Part shown: piece by piece, positions 53,912 through 64,000 of the stretch | Position numbering within the stretch: the first letter of the stretch is position 1 | How the letters are laid out: the number at the start of each line of letters is the position of its first letter | Source of the DNA: Lepidodermella squamata | Lineage: Eukaryota > Animalia > Gastrotricha | Length of the DNA stretch: 64,000 bases | Assembly (NCBI GenBank): GCA_047495785.1 | Contig: JBLDXI010000059.1 | Coordinates: 124,001 to 188,000, forward strand | Direction: 5' to 3' | Made by a program: the position numbers and the translations under genes | The notes under the pieces: model-generated | What the model saw: the letters and a program-made list of their open reading frames with translations, nothing else | Databases searched by the model: none | What the model was told of the DNA's origin: nothing

Positions 53912-55899
53912 TCACGAAACGAAGTCTTCTCCCGTTAGCAATGCTTCGCCTTGAGTCTGGCCAGAGGCTGTCATAATCATTTTATGTAGTAAAGTTTTGG
54001 CTTCAGCCTTACGGCGCCGGTTTTCTGTTTCCTGTTTGATTCGTTCAAGCAATTGTTGACCTTCAGCAATTCGTCGTCTTGATAACGAACAAGTTTTGCG
54101 AAGATGAAGATTGGGAACAGTTAGAACTTTTACAACACCATTTTCTTCGACCTGAAGTCCCAGCTGTTTGACACTAGGCGACAGATCCTCTCGAATCCTT
54201 AGAAAAATGACGTCATGATTTGCGAAATCGGAGCTGCCAAACGGGAAGCTTTGACGAAACTAATTTTAATAAGTAACATAGAGAAGAGATTTGTAAAGCA
54301 ACTCAAGAAATTACATACCTTGAGGCTGTCGGGCACAACTACATTTTTGAGTCGTTTAACGACTTGAATCCGGTCAATGGAATCTATTACAGTTTCGGTC
54401 TGCTCTTCATTCAGTAGCCGAAACCCTGTGACATCCCGAAGTTCGGTGTGCTGCATATTTTGAACAGATTGCTTCGACAGAAATGCGGCTTGAATTGCTG
54501 CTCCTTCGACGACGGCATTGTCATCCAGAGACGAGATGTGAATGACAGCCGTTCCGTTGAAATACTTTTTAACTAAATCTTGAACTTTCGGAATGCGACA
54601 GCACCCACCAAACATGTAAACGTGGCCTATGCTGTAGCGTTCAACCCTAGCTTTTCGTTTAGCTTCGGCTAACACTGTGTCGAAAAGTTTGGGTATGTCT
54701 TTGTCTAGCCGTTGCATCAAGGCTTCGAGCTCTTCGCGAGAAAATTGTATTTTGATAGGTTTTTCACCGCCTGCTTGAACAGTGAATGTAACATTAGTGG
54801 CGGCGGATAGAACGATTTTCTTCTTCTCGCAATCTCGCCGGATATTTACGAGAACTGAGGAATGACCGCTAGCTTCTCGACCATCTTCGTCTTTAATCAG
54901 CTTGTCCACGCAAGCATTGTACAGGCTTTCCGTCAGATCGGCGCCGCCATATTCTTGCGAACCTACACTTGCTACAACGTTGATTAATCCTTGCTTCAAT
55001 TCCATTACAGATGCCTCTAGCGAATCCGCGCTGAATCGGAAAGCTATAGCGTAGCCTCCGAAAGAATAAATCTCCTCGGGATGATAGGAGTTGCACAAAT
55101 AGTAGAGTCCACCTAAAATCAACTTGGTGTGCAATCGCGCGTTAATGAATCCAGCAATTTTAGCGGCGTCCAGGTAAGCTTGACGCTGGTGATCGTTGAA
55201 ACTCGACGGAATAGCCAGCACTGCACTTTCAACTCGTTTCCCATCGAGTTCTTTCTCAGCCCTGTCTTTAACGTAGGCTAGTAACAGGGCGAACTGCATA
55301 ACTGGCGACAACTCTACAGCCTCGTCGTTAGCGTCAAATATTGGCCATTTCACGGTTTTCTCTGATCGGTGGATATTTCTAACAAGATCTGTTGCCACTT
55401 TGCAATTTAGCTGCTTTAAAAAAGCTTGGGCTATTGTACCATAGACGATAGGTGGTGAGTGGGGAGGGTCCTCTCCCGGAGCAGCTATGTACGTTGGCGT
55501 CATATTTTGGCCATGTTCATTCTGCAATATTCTCACTGAAATGGAAGCAGAAAATAATTTAAGAAGGGCGGCAATCCTATCAATTTTACCTCGGCCATTT
55601 TGGATAAGTGCAAATCGAGTATTGACAGTTCCAATATCGATGCCTATAGTTGGAAATTCCCAAGCAACAATTTTCGGCTGATTCTCAGGCGTTTGGCTCG
55701 GTGCCGGGACCGATTGAGGAGAAGTCGCCGCTGTAGCACCATAACTTATCGAGTTGCTCTTGCCCTTCTTGCGGATCGGTTCGGACTGCAGCCGATTGAT
55801 CTGCTTGTTAACACGAACAACGCAGCAATACCACGAGAGGAGGAGGAAAAGCGTCACGCCTCCGAGAATGCTGAAAAATATTGCTATCACTTCAGACAT
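53912..55899 (-). CDS. N-terminally membrane-anchored, highly divergent Hsp70-family protein, 3 exons
   Basis: TM VIAIFFSILGGVTLFLLLSWYCCVV, then GIDIGT, NEHGQNMTPTYIA, PSSFNDHQRQAYLDAAKIAG, GGAD, CEKKKIVLS, FGGCCRIPKVQ, AVVEGAAIQAA. The last exon encodes a shortened SBD remnant (LQVEENGVVKV..LSRRRI..AEAK). Confidence 0.85.
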
Positions 55900-56162: not shown

Positions 56163-59100
56163 TTAATCAGCGTTCGTTTGAGACAATTGTTGCAATCTTG
56201 AAAGAGCTGCAAACAGCTGCAACATATTCGGCAAAGGCTCGTTGAAATGCTTGGACAGCGACGAAAAATAATATTCTGGAGCCTGAAAATCAACCTCAGT
56301 CTACTGAAATCTCCTCGTTTTTATTTTCCTACCTTTTTCTCCAACTGCAGCATAGTTGATAGCTTCTCGCCATCGAATTCCTCCATTTTAGCGCCAAATT
56401 TCCTTCAAAACAGGTGAAAATTAACATGAAGCTAAAAGTTCGCAAGACATACTGATAAAGCTTTTCCTGCTGCAACCATTTTTTCACGTCATTTTTCGAC
56501 CATTTCGAAACTGAGGGATTGAGCGGAATGTTATTTGAATCTCTACGACCAGTAGTACCATTGGCCGGCGCTGCTGCAGAGACGGAAGTCGGGGCTACTA
56601 TGTTGTTTTCCACGGGCGCATGGTTACCATTGACCTGCTTTACCGCGCTATTCTGCGAGCCACCGATAGCTTCAATTTCGGCTAGCAAATGCTCGAACGC
56701 TTCCTCGAATTGCGATTTTGTTAAAGACATGTCGATGTACTTTCTGGCTCGCACTAGAATACCTAGCCAGCCATCAGGAGCATAACTGAAATACGCAAAG
56801 CAATGAGGACGAAATCATTGACTCGACAATAACGTACTGATACTCCATGTTTATAGGAATCATAGGTTTCGATAGAACGTGCGTGTATTGAGCTGAAAGA
56901 TTCATATGCAAATTCGAAGGTATATCGGTGAATAAATTAGCTGACCTTCAGCGCGGCAAGGATTACTCAGCTTGTAGCTATCTGAGAAGCAAACTAGCAC
57001 TAGCCACGCGTTTTCCACTGCCTGGGCCATTTTCTCTAGCAAGTCGCCGTGCATCTTGTCAACGTCCATCCAAACTTTGAAGCCTTTTGCGACAAGCTGA
57101 GCTTTCATTCGCAAAACAGTCTCCTGCTGTTTCCAAGAATAGCTGATGAAAATGTGCCGGTCATTTGCGTCTCCAGTTCGGCGTTTCGTCGGCGAAGCGC
57201 CGCCCTCCACAATTTTCTCCCATTTTTCGATGAAATTCAGCGTGCGACTAGCAATTTTTTTGACATTTTCATCTTCGGAGAGAGTTAAATTTTTCAAGGG
57301 ATTCATCAATTTCTCCTTCTCGGCCCTGATTTTGCTGCGGATCGAAGATTCGTAAGACAGAGCCCACAACAACTCAAGTCCTTTGATCTGATCATCAGGC
57401 CTGTCGCTGTCCAGCATGTCCGAAATGAGGTCAACGACGTAGTTGTCCATAAGCGTTTTCTTGTTGTGATCATTCGAGGCAAGAGCTCGCAGTCCGTCCA
57501 TCAATTCGTCCAGGGTAAATAGGCCTACCCCAGGGCTAAAGGCTTTGCGGCCAGGGTGGTTCATTGCCATTTTAGTCAGTTGCACGATAGATTTTACCAC
57601 TCCTTTTTCGTCGACCAACTTGGACGATTCCTCTGAATCAGCTAAGATATGCGCCAGGCACAAACTTCCTAGTATCAACGAGTTGGGCACACTTAGATGC
57701 TTTGTGATAATCTATAGAAAAATTTTAAATTCGAAACCCCATGGCAAGCATTTTTTATCACCTTAACGGCGTCGTTGCCCAACAGTTCGTTTTTGTTTTC
57801 GGGCGAACGGGCCAGATTGTACAGGATAAAAATACACTTTTGAGCCAGGTCAGCGTTGACGTGACCTTTCTGTCCCTTTTCGGGTCCATTTTTGAGATTT
57901 TTCAGCAAAAATGGTATGAAACCGGCTTTAGCAAAAGCCTATTAAGTAAGGTGGGACATAAGAAATCTGGAATATAAAATTCGAAATTTCTTACCAATCT
58001 AGCATCAACGAGCTCCGTTATGTTCGAAATGTGAAGAAGTAGATTTTGAATCATTTGGAAAGCGACATCATTCGACTCGAGATTTTGTTTCAACAAAAAC
58101 TTCGAAAAAACGAAAGCAATATCTGCGAAAAGAACAAAACAGCTTAACCTTATTTTCGAGCATCTGAAACTATTTTTACCTGGATAATTTTCTTGAATCA
58201 AAACCTGAACGACTTTTTCGCGCCATTTAGGATCCCAAGCTGAGAACGAATCGTTGAGCAACTCTATTGCCCGTGCAGATTCGTTGCAAACCAAGCTCGT
58301 CGGGGATAGGTCGTTCAGTTTTGTGAGAAAATTAACACGTAATCGCGTTTCATTCAACGCCCGCTCTAATAAATGAATCATATCATTGTCCTGAAAAGTT
58401 GCCTCGCCGTCCTGCTTATTGTTGTCCTGCTGTAGAAGCAACGTGTCATTCGATTCACTCTCTTTCAGCCTCTTCACCTCGCCGTCAGTTTCGCTATTCG
58501 GCGATTCCGAATCGGCCTTGACAGTGGAATTGCCTTGCGGTTCTTCTGATATCGAAGATCTAACTGCAGCCGAACTCGCATTACCTTCGCGTTGTTGTTT
58601 GATATTCGAAAGGATTTTCTTCGCCTTCAAAACGGGCATAGTTTCGAGCGACGAACTGTTCATTGCCGAAACTTTGCCCCACATCACCTGAATATCTTGT
58701 TGAGAGAGAGCTGTTTGGCTGAGCTTTGTTCGCTCCGAGAAAAGAGCCAGAAACAGCTCAACGCCTCTCAGCTGCGTGTTTTCATTGCTAGAATTCAGCA
58801 GCTCGCAAATCGAGTTGATAACCCCATTTTGCAGCAGTTTCTTCATATTTGCCTCATTCTGGCTGATATAGACTAGCCCATCGACTAGACCATCTACCGG
58901 CATGCGAAACTCGTGCTTGCTACCGGGTTTCAGCTCATTGGTTATGGCGCGGATGAAAACGAGGTTAACATTTCGGTCGTCCACAAATTTCGCAGCCGGG
59001 GGTGATCGTCCGTTCAGAAGTTTCAGAAAGCACAGCGAAGCCATGCATTTAATATCTTCATCAGTTGCGTCCATCATATTGGCAAATGTCTAAAATAAGG

Positions 59101-59872
59101 AATAATATATGTTCATCCGCCTTAATGAGTCAATTGAAAACGAACGCCCATTGCTCCACTCTTCATGAAATCATTTGCGTAGACGTTCGATTTCAAGATA
59201 TTCAGAGCCGTATGCAAGCAGCATCGAACCAAGAAATTATCGTTACTTGGGGCCTAATTTGTATAAATTTTAAATCACGTTGTTGGACGTAAAAATTTGC
59301 GATTACTTCGTCTGTTTTCGGCTTCGGGGCATTGTTTTTGAGCTTCGCAATCTCCTGAGACAAAAATCCCATGATCACTTCGACAGCTCCAGCCTTGGCT
59401 AGTTGCTGATTTAAAAAAATGTGTAGTATAAAAAATCTAATTTTAAACTTATATCTACCTGTCTAAAGTCTTTGTAGTCGCTAAAATTTGACATGGAACC
59501 GAACAAGTTACGACAAAATTTGGCTGTGCCGTCATCTTTTCCTGTGGCTTTTGGAATAGTTTGCTTCATTATCGCTACCAAAGACTCTGAATGGTTGTAG
59601 TTCAAATATTACAACAATTTCTCGATAATTATTAAATAGAAAATACCAGGGTAGCCTTCTTCTGATAGCGCGGCTGCAACTTCTTGCCGCCATTGCTTCC
59701 AGTCGCCGTAACTCTTGTGAACTTTCCACACAACGTCCCTGGTGTCTTTCGTCACGAATGACTTCGGGTTTGATTTCACGAATTTGACCAAAGCCTTGAC
59801 GCGTGACCTGGTTTCGGCGACTGCCTCTTCCACCGAATGTGCCACAGAGTTTTCCGGAACACTGCTGGTCAT
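56163..59872 (-). CDS. Tandem ARM-like helical modules - TIR - SAM-like protein, multi-exon
   Basis: Two homologous helical modules (AETRSRVKALVK.. and NETRLRVNFLTK..) with ARM-like LYNLARSPENK, LRALASNDHNK, LLWALSY. TIR: HIFISYSW..GFKVWMD..MAQAVENA..SYKLSNPCRAEAQY..KPMIPI..YAPDGWLG. SAM-like: VSKWSKNDVKKWL..FDGEKL..APEYYF. Confidence 0.88.
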
Positions 59873-60160
59873 TTTAAAACGTGTCGAATGTGCCGCAAAT
59901 GAAAAATAAAGCTAGCATGATCTGCGTTTCCTTTCAGCGCGGCAAGGTGAGAGGTAAACATCCTTTGAAATCGCGTCAAAGGACGTTATTCATAGCAACT
60001 GCTCCGCCTCTAATCGGATAATAGCGTGAGCCAAGTCGGCGGCGCGCTCAATTTCGTCACAGAATGAGTTGTACCCATATTAAGTGAGTTTTAAAGTCGT
60101 AAAAATTTGTGGCTTTATTGAAAACAAAAAAATCAATTCGCGACGTAACTAAACAACAGC

Positions 60161-63100
60161 CTAGTTGTTTATGGTGTCAGGAAACGATGCAGAAAGACGT
60201 TCAAGTGCCGCATACAGTTCAAGCATATTAGGCAAACTCTCGTCGAAATGCTTGGAGACTGCGGCGTAGTAGTATTCAGGTGCCTAGAGACGATAAACAA
60301 AAAAACACGAGTATTCAGGAAACAGCACGAATCTAGGGCACGCGAAGATTTACCTCCTTGTGGAGTTGTAAAAGCTGCCACAGTTTAATTCCGTCAAATT
60401 CGACCATCTTTTTGCCAAATTTGCTGTAAATAATAAGGCTGTTACTACGAAAATATCGATTAGACAAGGAAGCCTTACTCTTTCAGCTTTTCGAGTGACA
60501 ACCAGTACAAAATATCATCTTTTGTCCAGTGCATTAGATGATTTGGGTTCAAGCCCTTCGGAGGAATTTTCTTCTCGTCAAGTAAAGGTAGGACAATACT
60601 CGCATATTGCTTCGACTCGTCGACTTTGCGATCATTTTTCGGTTTGGCTTCGGCTGAATCGTTCCGCTTCGTTTCTTCGACTTTGTGGTCGATTTTCGGC
60701 GTGACTTCGGATGGTTCATTCGGCTTCGGTCCATGGTCTTTTGGTTTGGCTTCTGCTGACTCTTTCCGCTTCGATTCGTCGACGTGGCTATCGTTAATTG
60801 GTTCAACTTCAGCACCGCGATCGGGAACCGGACTCTTTTCTCTTGCAGAATCTTCAGGCACTTCTTCAGTTTTTGAAGTGTTCACCTGCTCCGAAGGCTC
60901 GCTTATTGGCATTTCGGGGGCTGGAGATGGGCGGCGGCTGACAGCAGGCTCTAAATTTGAATTCCTACGGCTATTCGTTTCCTTAGCATCCGTCACAGAC
61001 TGAACGAGCGAATGTAAGATTTCTTCGACCGTAGCTTTTGCTGTTTCAGTTTCCTCATTTTCCTCGACCACGTTATCTTTGGAAGTTGGCCGAGGTGAGG
61101 TCTTCCCATCTATAACTGATTGGGGCCGACTAGCAGCTTTTGCATTAGGTGAGGGACTTGGCCGACTCTTGGAATCTTCTAGCTGAGCCCCGGGAGTTGG
61201 GGTAATTCTCCTTTCTCCTTCGACATTGACAAGGGGCTCATTTTTGTCGACGATTTTCTCAGTTGCTGATGTTGGCCTGGTTGGCGATTTACTTCGTTTT
61301 TTACTCTCGTTGGAAGTTGGAGAGGTTCTGCCGCTAGCAGGCGGCGATTTTCGAAGCGCAGCCGATTTGTTAGCGTTTATCCGAGCAATTAGCCGGTTCG
61401 CCATCAGACCATGAATGGGAGAATCAAGAAATGTGGATAAAGCCTGAAAAATAGAGATTTAACCTCGAGTGGAAATTAGGTCTTATTGCTGCGTTACATC
61501 AGATGCGTTATTATCGTTGAACGTTTGACACAACTCGGGACTTTGAGCCAAACAACTCAACAAATTTATTGCTTCGTAGGCCACAGCATCAGCGGCAGGC
61601 AACTGAAAAATATCCAAGTGGTAGAGAAACAAAATTTCCCAATCTATTTACCTCGCTATCCGAGGTCTGCTTCTTCAGATAATCAAGTAAAAATTCCAGA
61701 AGTTCATCGGCTAGAGGCTGGAAAATGGAATAGCAATTCATTTTAATCAAAATTAGTAATTCAACTTACCTTTCGAATAGCAGGACAAACTGAACCGATT
61801 GCTGAAAGGTAGGAGTAGATATGCGTGATGAGTTGGGCAGATTCTGGAGCAGGTTCAGCCAGGTAATTTTCCGTGAAGGCTCGAGAATACGCGCCCGAAA
61901 CAGCTGCAAAAAATTATTAGAAATTTTGCGGATTTATAAAAATTATCAGAAATTTTGTTACCGGGCAATGGTTCTCGAATCATGGACTCCGAAATTTCAG
62001 GCAGCCAGTCAGCAGGCCACGCATTCACAGACTCAGCAATCAGCTTCCAGGCTAAGCGAGGTTCAGGGCTCGTCAAACTGGACGAAGACAGCTTGTTGAG
62101 TTTTTCCAGAAAATTCACGCGCAGGCGCATTTCGCTAATCGCGTCGGCTTCCGCCTCAATCACTTCGTTCTGCTTAAACACGACAGCGCCAGGCTCTTTT
62201 ATCGGCCCAGGATCAGGAGGCGATTCAATGCGGAATGTTTTAGACCGCGTGCTCTGATCGAGCGTGTTTTCTTTCTGCGCTTCATTCTCATCTTCTTCAA
62301 TGACGCTGTCGACAAGGGGATTGCCAGCTTCGAACTGAATTCCAGGCGTAGTTGCAGCTGTTTCAGGGCGGCTGGGATTCAACCGCTTTCGTCGGATTAA
62401 ATCAATCGCGTCGATGTTTTTTGTTATCAACTCGGCATTTCTGTTATTAAATTCGGTCATATTCTTGATGATCTCGAGGCACTGTAGTAACCGAGAAATC
62501 TCGCCATCGGTAATTTGAAGCGTGTGATCTCCGGTCGCCAACGCTAAAAGCAGGTGCAAAGTGCGCCTTCGAAGTCCATGAAGCCCGTTGACTTCTAGCA
62601 AGCGAATAATAGTGCTGATAACGCCGAATTTCATCAATTTCGGCTTGTTCGCTTCAAAGTCACACAGGTGGGTGAGTCCGGTTATCAACGCTTCGACCGC
62701 TTCTACAGATACTTTCACGTCGCTTAGATTCTGGTTGCCTGATGCTAATGCGGCATCTAGCCAAGCGGTGATTGCCTTGATGAATACCGCTCCTACGTTT
62801 TTCTCATCATTGTAATTATTCTGCGGCTTCTTGTTGTGAAGCAAGTTTAAATGGCACAAAGCCGCGAGGCACTTGACTTCCTCGTCAAGCCCGCTAATCA
62901 AAATCGGGAAAATCTGAAATTTGAAGACGTAACTTTTCTGAAGGTGAAGATCAGGTAACATACGTTCATAGCGCCGGCATTAATCATTTCTACCGTGTGG
63001 TCGGGCGTTTTCAGCAAGTTCAGCAGCAATTGGAGACAGCTTTTCGTCAAGAAATTGTTGGGAGCCCCTGCACCCTGCGTCATAGCTGGGTTCTTTATCT

Positions 63101-63628
63101 CATTTGACAGGTGTTGCAACATAACTTCAACAGCTCCATGTTTCGCCAGATTCTACAAGATAGCGAATTAAAATCAGGTTATAATTATAACATGAAAATT
63201 AGGTCACATTTCCGAACGGAAAATAGTCGCTAAAATTCGCAGCACTGCCGAAAAGATTCCTTGAAAGTTTATAGAGCCCTTCGTCTTTTGGATTGAAGGA
63301 TTTAACACATTGTTTGATCAGAGCCATGACTATTTCTGAAGTAAAAAGAATGCATGTTGTGAACCTTTTGCCACTTCAACAAAAAACTACCTGCGTATCC
63401 GTTGTCGTCAAGTACAGTTGCTATTTCTTGCCGCCATGCTTTCCATTCGAAATAAGATTTCTGAATTCTCCAAACTGTTTCTCTCAGTTCAGCGTTATTC
63501 GGAGTCCTAGCAGCACTGCTGAGTTTCTGCAAGAACTTGACCCTCGACTTAGTCTCTTGTTTGGCCCCATCAAGAGAAACGATACTCTGGTTTTCGCGCG
63601 GCGTGAACGGCGCGTTTTGCTTTGCCAT
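60161..63628 (-). CDS. Paralogous ARM-like modules - disordered linker - SAM-like protein lacking the TIR domain, multi-exon
   Basis: Module 1 (QETKSRVKFLQKL..WKAWRQEIA), truncated module 2 (SEMRLRVNFLEKL), a ~270-aa S/P/K/E-rich segment, then MHWTKDDILYWL..KFGKKMVEFDGIKL..APEYYYAAVSKHFDESLPNMLELYAAL. All exons join in frame by GT-AG splicing. Confidence 0.82.
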
Positions 63629-64000
63629 TGCATTAATCTCAAACCAAACCGGCTGCTAACTCATATGTCAAATGATTTTCTCACATATCTACGCATTTAG
63701 CCCACCGTTGCAAAGGAAGCGATCGATATGTTGTGCCAAGCAACACTTATTAGCGAAGAAAGACCGTCCAGTGCGCGACATACTTCTTAGCAAAACCGAG
63801 TCCGCTAATCGAGATTATTGGACATTGCATACCTAAGTATGCGCCCTAAGTTTCCTTTATAGTACCATCAAATTATTTCTTATTTTCTGAGTTTTAATAG
63901 CAAGTTCCTGTTACCCTAGAAAATATTTGTAATATTTCAAAATAAAATGGTTTATTTTTCATCAGTCACGAAATATTGCAGACGACAGGTAAAACGACAA

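Follow-up and report, generated by a model that had tools for sequence, protein, structure and literature searches.

The 64,000-nucleotide stretch analysed here (the window; C59:124001-188000 of the 121-Mb, 151-contig assembly of a compact eukaryotic genome) carries two intact genes, here called A and B, that lie head to tail on its minus strand and encode armadillo (ARM)-like repeats followed by a C-terminal tail with a predicted SAM fold. Gene A also encodes a TIR domain, and gene B does not. B is a long-maintained TIR-less paralogue of A. Judging from the exon-by-exon comparison, B no longer encodes the TIR or the C-terminal portion of ARM module 2; a low-complexity stretch stands in their place, followed by a SAM tail as constrained as that of A. 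We tentatively propose, with a probability of about 40%, that the B protein would be a noncatalytic subunit that co-assembles through its SAM domain with TIR-bearing relatives, A first among them, and lowers the clustering of their TIR domains. The two genes have the following structures (positions are those of the window unless a contig or locus is named).

Gene A, 56163..59872, minus strand: 12 exons, 1039 codons; layout head1-ARM1-linker-head2-ARM2-TIR-linker-SAM; GT-AG sites, phases, and frames were read.
Exons of gene A, minus strand: 59872-59647, 59586-59459, 59405-59307, 59253-59146, 59089-58180, 58122-57995, 57938-57762, 57711-56946, 56892-56838, 56785-56453, 56402-56333, 56282-56163.
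Gene B, 60161..63628, minus strand: 10 exons, 989 codons; layout head1-ARM1-linker-head2-start of ARM2-low-complexity stretch-SAM, with no TIR; homologous to gene A exon by exon.
Exons of gene B, minus strand: 63628-63391, 63335-63208, 63152-62964, 62913-61962, 61903-61770, 61717-61652, 61602-61498, 61443-60479, 60423-60354, 60283-60161.

Gene models, searches, and folds were all done exon by exon, by coordinates. Both genes encode two modules, each consisting of a helical head of ~75 residues and the ARM-like repeats that follow it; the second copy of the head is located within exons A5 and B5. Eight introns are common to A and B, in the same position and phase. One further intron is found only in A, in module 1 (A3|A4), and its equivalent in B lies in module 2 (B7a|B7b); the two introns that interrupt the TIR of A have no counterparts in B. 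The introns of both genes are 49 to 70 nt long and follow the GT-AG rule without exception. The tentative assignment of the repeats to the ARM type comes from several searches: exon A8 matches Pfam ARM_ARMC5 at 1.4e-4, which is below the cut-off, a search with a paralogue retrieved designed armadillo proteins (1e-6), and jackhmmer shows ARM1 of A and of B to be homologous to segments like the armadillo-matching one of that paralogue. When searched alone, ARM1 gives only ARMC7, with an E value of 0.32.

The TIR of gene A is recognised both by Pfam TIR_2 and by a hidden Markov model (HMM) built from 18 family members.

TIR of gene A, 56665..57153, minus strand: split over exons A8, A9, and A10.

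Pfam TIR_2 matches exon A8 alone at 5.8e-15 (56.3 bits against a cut-off of 28), and the family TIR HMM scores 137, 60, and 18 bits on A8, A10, and A9, respectively. A six-frame TIR_2 scan of the whole genome returned at least 66 stretches, and the only one within the window is that of gene A (58 bits at C59:180929-181153). The solved structure closest to this TIR by sequence is that of the human SARM1 TIR, a weak match (E value, 0.02). The domain has a Glu residue after its third strand, within a C-R-A-E (C-x-x-E) motif, and the HMMER alignment to SARM1 ends before it; by the motif only, this residue would occupy the catalytic Glu site of TIR NADases, equivalent to E642 of SARM1. In gene B, the Pfam scan of the exons gave no TIR_2 match, and the family TIR HMM scored no higher than 2.8 bits anywhere in positions 60000-63900, with all frames, both strands, and the introns included.

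What B has in place of the TIR is encoded in a single exon, B8 (61443-60479), an open frame of 321 codons that includes the start of ARM2, a low-complexity stretch, and the first SAM helix. Since this one exon runs from the beginning of ARM2 into the SAM, the architecture of the junction is independent of the splicing model.

Low-complexity stretch, 60559..61362, minus strand: 268 residues within B8, in place of the rest of ARM2 and the TIR.
Tandem duplication of 57 bp, 60609..60728, minus strand: 2.1 copies with 76% match, within the low-complexity stretch.

The first ~27 residues of B8 align to the start of A8, with an identity of only 17%. The 268-residue stretch consists of 12.7% S, 12.7% E, 12.3% P, and 10.4% K, with 14.6% hydrophobic residues and 11 SP/TP sites, so that it is rich in candidate sites for phosphorylation, and its 57-bp duplication shows local expansion. 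A single-sequence AlphaFold2 model of this part of B8 has a mean predicted local distance difference test (pLDDT) score of 52.7 and is mostly coil, apart from one helix predicted for exon residues 130-162. Nowhere else in the genome does the stretch have a paralogue, and no relic of a TIR or ARM domain was found in it in any frame. The first-pass annotation of this DNA had described the neighbours as sharing module architecture and intron positions, had expected an HMMER scan for TIR over B to give no match, and had half of module 2 and the entire TIR of B replaced by ~270 residues of S/P/K/E-rich sequence in an intact frame; the measurements given above agree with it in all these respects, and the tail peptides that it quoted are present in both genes.

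The tails of A and B are each encoded by parts of three exons with the same intron phases. They were recognised with a profile made from the alignment of family tails (alignment A4), in which the exon pieces of A and B form separate rows.

SAM-fold tail of A, 56193..56502, minus strand: end of A10, A11, and A12; score of A12 against the family tail profile, 58.3 bits.
SAM-fold tail of B, 60194..60528, minus strand: end of B8, B11, and B12; score of B12 against the family tail profile, 55.3 bits.

The PDB matches of this profile are almost exclusively SAM domains (1.5e-8 to 0.06), with liprin-beta1 on top (1.5e-8), followed by ETV6, Shank2, SARM1, and Caenorhabditis elegans TIR-1. The AlphaFold2 model of the tail of a paralogue that encodes ARM, TIR, and tail in one exon (pLDDT, 94) has a short N-terminal turn and then five helices, and Foldseek searches with this model are led by the SAM domains of SARM1 (SAM1-2), Shank2, Scm, Ph, and DGK-delta (template modelling scores, 0.66-0.71; probability, ~1). 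Pfam SAM_1 gives 19.7 bits, with a cut-off of 23, on the tail of a clathrin chimera from the same family (see below). Judged by profile and model, the family tail is a divergent SAM fold.

In the SAM core, 44 of 70 residues (63%) are identical between A and B, as read off the exon alignments; the figure falls to 55% when 80 tail residues are compared and to 35% for 594 residues of the heads and ARM repeats. The first-pass annotation had the SAM tails as similar and the ARM modules as much more diverged, which is right in direction (63% versus 35%) but only partly in degree, as the first exons of the two genes are 41-50% identical. Among the family tails, the one nearest to B's SAM is that of A, the others having core identities of ~50-57%. 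For nearly every exon, the proportion of synonymous differences (pS) between the two genes lies in the range 0.63-0.81, near or at saturation; it exceeds 1 in the 23-codon A11/B11 pair. From these values it follows that the duplication is old. The saturated pS also rejects recent gene conversion as the source of the SAM similarity, and it makes the per-domain ratio of nonsynonymous to synonymous divergence (dN/dS) not estimable, so relative-rate counts were used. For the tails, these counts (A:B) are 7:7, 6:8, 3:6, and 4:5 with four different outgroups; changes this symmetric indicate that the SAM of B is as constrained as that of A. The reading in the first-pass annotation, that selection has kept SAM-SAM co-polymerisation, is thus supported in part: the SAM in B is constrained, but SAM evolves slowly throughout the family and not in this pair alone. 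With 989 codons and nine introns intact over such a long time, B is not a pseudogene.

Genes A and B belong to a family of ~14 tail-bearing genes in this genome, found at C19 (1.081, 1.097-1.100, and 1.129-1.139 Mb), C20 (755-760 kb), C33 (1.138-1.142 Mb), and in the window. Twelve of these encode a TIR, and the ARM-TIR_2-tail architecture is that of A and ~11 paralogues. The two TIR-less genes are B and the clathrin chimera, an open frame of 690 residues (L007:3757-5826, minus strand; C19:1097757-1099826) in which clathrin heavy-chain repeats (Pfam, 3.4e-37) are joined to a family SAM tail, with no TIR. The chimera adjoins a TIR-SAM gene (L007:6386-7150), and the two tails are 59% identical.

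In the Atlas, clusters that combine Arm with TIR_2, with or without SAM_2, are found in molluscs, rotifers, and other organisms, with SARM1 clusters ranked next, so the wider ARM-TIR-SAM kind is already catalogued. Proteins with two modules, as in A and B, are rare: a search of 1.84 billion representatives with an A5/B5 profile returned one true relative, P0001, as well as a bacterial PAS protein that was rejected as a spurious match. P0001 is encoded on a metagenomic contig in ENA (k141_1017578; L006:805-3248) that is 20 kb long, has a GC content of 37.5%, and comes from another eukaryote. The P0001 gene has few introns, and its layout is head1, ARM1, head2, a diverged second repeat region, and the family tail. 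Length-limited word-based searches of protein sets, in which the A5 and A8 frames and P0001 served as queries, gave nothing new, and a scan of metagenome DNA found no relatives. In the ARM tree, the ARM1 modules of A, B, and P0001 form one clade (support, 100/99), and ARM2 of A groups with the C20 genes (81/90). For the branching of A, B, and P0001 in the ARM1 tree, the two alternatives have p values of 0.18 and 0.13 in the approximately unbiased test; as this tree does not settle the order, a single loss of the TIR and two losses both fit.

Signalling and NAD+ consumption by TIR domains require that these domains come together, which in SARM1 is the work of the SAM ring. In the proposed role, the SAM of B would let it enter the oligomers that TIR-bearing relatives, foremost A, would form through their own SAM domains. 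A B subunit within such an array would dilute or terminate it, which would leave fewer, or gated, TIR-TIR contacts of the kind that TIR activity needs, with a negative net effect. B would then be a natural equivalent of the engineered TIR-less SARM1, a dominant negative, and would resemble the SAM cappers Mae and ANKS6. We infer that the single SAM oligomerises, that A and B co-assemble, and that the effect is negative. Besides the intact genes, the missing TIR, the old duplication, the symmetric tail changes, and the SAM fold, this account is favoured by a second TIR-less gene, the clathrin chimera, with a tail like that of its TIR-SAM neighbour, and by P0001, a TIR-less two-module relative in another species. 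A more general and more doubtful proposition is that TIR-less partners arise again and again in animals in which the ARM-TIR-SAM family has expanded, each with a SAM like that of the TIR-bearing gene beside it. Through mixed SAM assemblies, such partners would gate TIR clustering, as an animal counterpart of the decoy and regulator pairs in the TIR immunity of plants and bacteria. Examples would be B beside A and the clathrin-SAM chimera beside its TIR-SAM gene.

Several observations weigh against co-assembly of B with A. The SAM fold was modelled on the tail of the paralogue, and A and B were placed in it by a profile of exon pieces; in the one-exon paralogue itself, Pfam found TIR_2 and no SAM at E values up to 1, and a genome scan with SAM_2 did not reach any family tail. 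SAM is the slowest-evolving part of these proteins across the family and across species and not just in A and B. All tail-bearing genes except one (C19:1.081M) are in tandem clusters, so the adjacency of A and B follows from the tandem origin of the family. Finally, no TIR was found in the 13 kb that were read at P0001, and no TIR gene lies within 10 kb downstream of it.

An alternative that is nearly as likely as co-assembly, though still below even odds, is that B acts on its own, as a SAM-driven scaffold or adaptor in which the ARM-like modules and the flexible stretch bind other partners, a case of neofunctionalisation after loss of the TIR. This would fit P0001, a TIR-less two-module ARM-SAM protein whose gene is not followed by a TIR gene within 10 kb, and also the stretch in B8, which is unique in the genome and has 11 SP/TP sites and a predicted helix; tandem duplication would account for the position of B next to A. 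However, the SAM of B is still nearest to that of A (63% core identity versus ~50-57% for other tails), and B is not the only TIR-less gene with a neighbour-like tail, the clathrin chimera being the second. The explanations considered below are less likely.

It is improbable that A and B are a sensor and a helper of the kind seen in paired nucleotide-binding leucine-rich repeat (NLR) proteins, in which case the ARM modules or the flexible stretch of B would do the sensing and its SAM would nucleate A. The architecture is compatible with this, and the SP/TP-rich stretch could take kinase input. ARM1 of B has 20 unique changes, compared to 10 in A, when P0001 (L006) is the outgroup, but this asymmetry is not significant (p 0.10) and disappears with other outgroups. 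In addition, A retains two ARM modules of its own and so does not need a separate sensor, and domain scans revealed no recognisable integrated decoy domain.

The distance between the two genes bears on whether the TIR-less state of B is an artefact of the gene model.

Spacer from the stop of B to the start of A, 59873..60160, minus strand: 288 bp, with an AATAAA ~45 nt past the stop of B.

Genes on the same strand with a spacer this short and with compatible phases (e.g., B7b and A8, both phase 0) might produce read-through transcripts in which exons of B are spliced to the TIR exons of A. We consider this very improbable, as B has a complete SAM tail, a stop codon, and the AATAAA, and its exon B8 has remained open over 321 codons even though the duplicate is old. 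That B is a functionless duplicate in decay is the least credible explanation, as the loss of a domain and the gain of low-complexity sequence with a recent 57-bp duplication are outweighed by 989 codons and nine canonical introns that are intact at saturated synonymous sites, by the absence from B8 of the ~18 chance stops expected by arithmetic from base composition, and by a SAM that changes no faster than that of A.

Returning to the proposed co-assembly, a TIR-less paralogue that has been naturally kept, with a constrained SAM, beside its TIR-bearing sister would be a ready test case, which could show how the invertebrate ARM-TIR-SAM proteins, a large family, are controlled. If B instead acts alone, it would show an immune-type enzyme turned into a scaffold.

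The window and the rest of the genome contain several other features. An unrelated Hsp70-like open frame of 566 residues in one exon (window 54199-55899) lies on the same strand 263 bp downstream of A, so the tight spacing of A and B is not peculiar to this pair. Intron 5 of gene A (window 58123-58179) comprises 57 nt in frame and without a stop codon, and its retention would add 19 residues and keep the frame; the mechanical list of open reading frames runs through it uninterrupted. A sequence on contig C3 (L005:4144-4722; C3:4367144-4367722) resembles head2 and the start of ARM2 of A (55% identity over 147 residues; 87% over 32) and contains several stops; we regard it as a probable decayed remnant of a partial copy. 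At C9:3036539-3037429, on the minus strand, Pfam matches to SAM_2 and TIR_2 adjoin each other in the order SAM, then TIR, and this locus may be a SARM1-like gene of the genome. At C32:1888003-2002857, there is a row of very long open frames, of up to 2620 residues, with TIR_2 in each, which form a separate large TIR cluster.

Known systems resemble A and B to different degrees. As in paired plant NLRs, A and B are adjacent and related and one of them is modified; however, no NB-ARC or NACHT domain was found in the domain scan of any exon, there is no recognisable integrated decoy domain, the genes are arranged head to tail and not head to head, and adjacency is common to the whole family. The paired-NLR analogy is used here as a hypothesis only.

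Uncharacterised ARM-TIR(-SAM) proteins of invertebrates have been described as “evolutionarily conserved TIR-domain-containing” classes (Gerdol et al. 2017, in the form in which PMC6321704 and PMC6836662 cite it). A and its ~11 paralogues are like them in combining ARM, TIR_2, and the tail; for the two-module form of A and B, P0001 was the one relative among the 1.84 billion representatives.

Among SAM proteins that limit polymers, the SAM domain of Mae caps Yan polymers (PMC3355116), and the SAM of ANKS6 binds the ANKS3 polymer at one of its ends, ANKS6 and ANKS3 being alike in having repeats followed by a C-terminal SAM (PMC4105859). A and B are likewise paralogues made of repeats and a SAM. 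In the Mae/Yan and ANKS6/ANKS3 pairs, one-sided SAM binding limits the partner polymer, whereas A and B are known here from their genes.

With respect to SARM1 and TIR-1, the order of domains in A is ARM-TIR-SAM, with one SAM, whereas SARM1 has the order ARM-SAM-SAM-TIR, and A does not qualify as its orthologue. The family SAM also falls below the Pfam SAM models, the head/ARM module is duplicated, and the proteins are known here from sequence alone. On the other hand, the ARM-like, SAM, and TIR kinds of domain are all present in A, the best PDB match of its TIR is the SARM1 TIR, and Foldseek places SARM1 SAM1-2 (24% identity) first for the family tail. SARM1 from which the TIR was deleted inhibits wild-type SARM1 (PMC6363435, PMC8635717), and it is this engineered dominant-negative protein without a TIR (PMC6363435) that B resembles.

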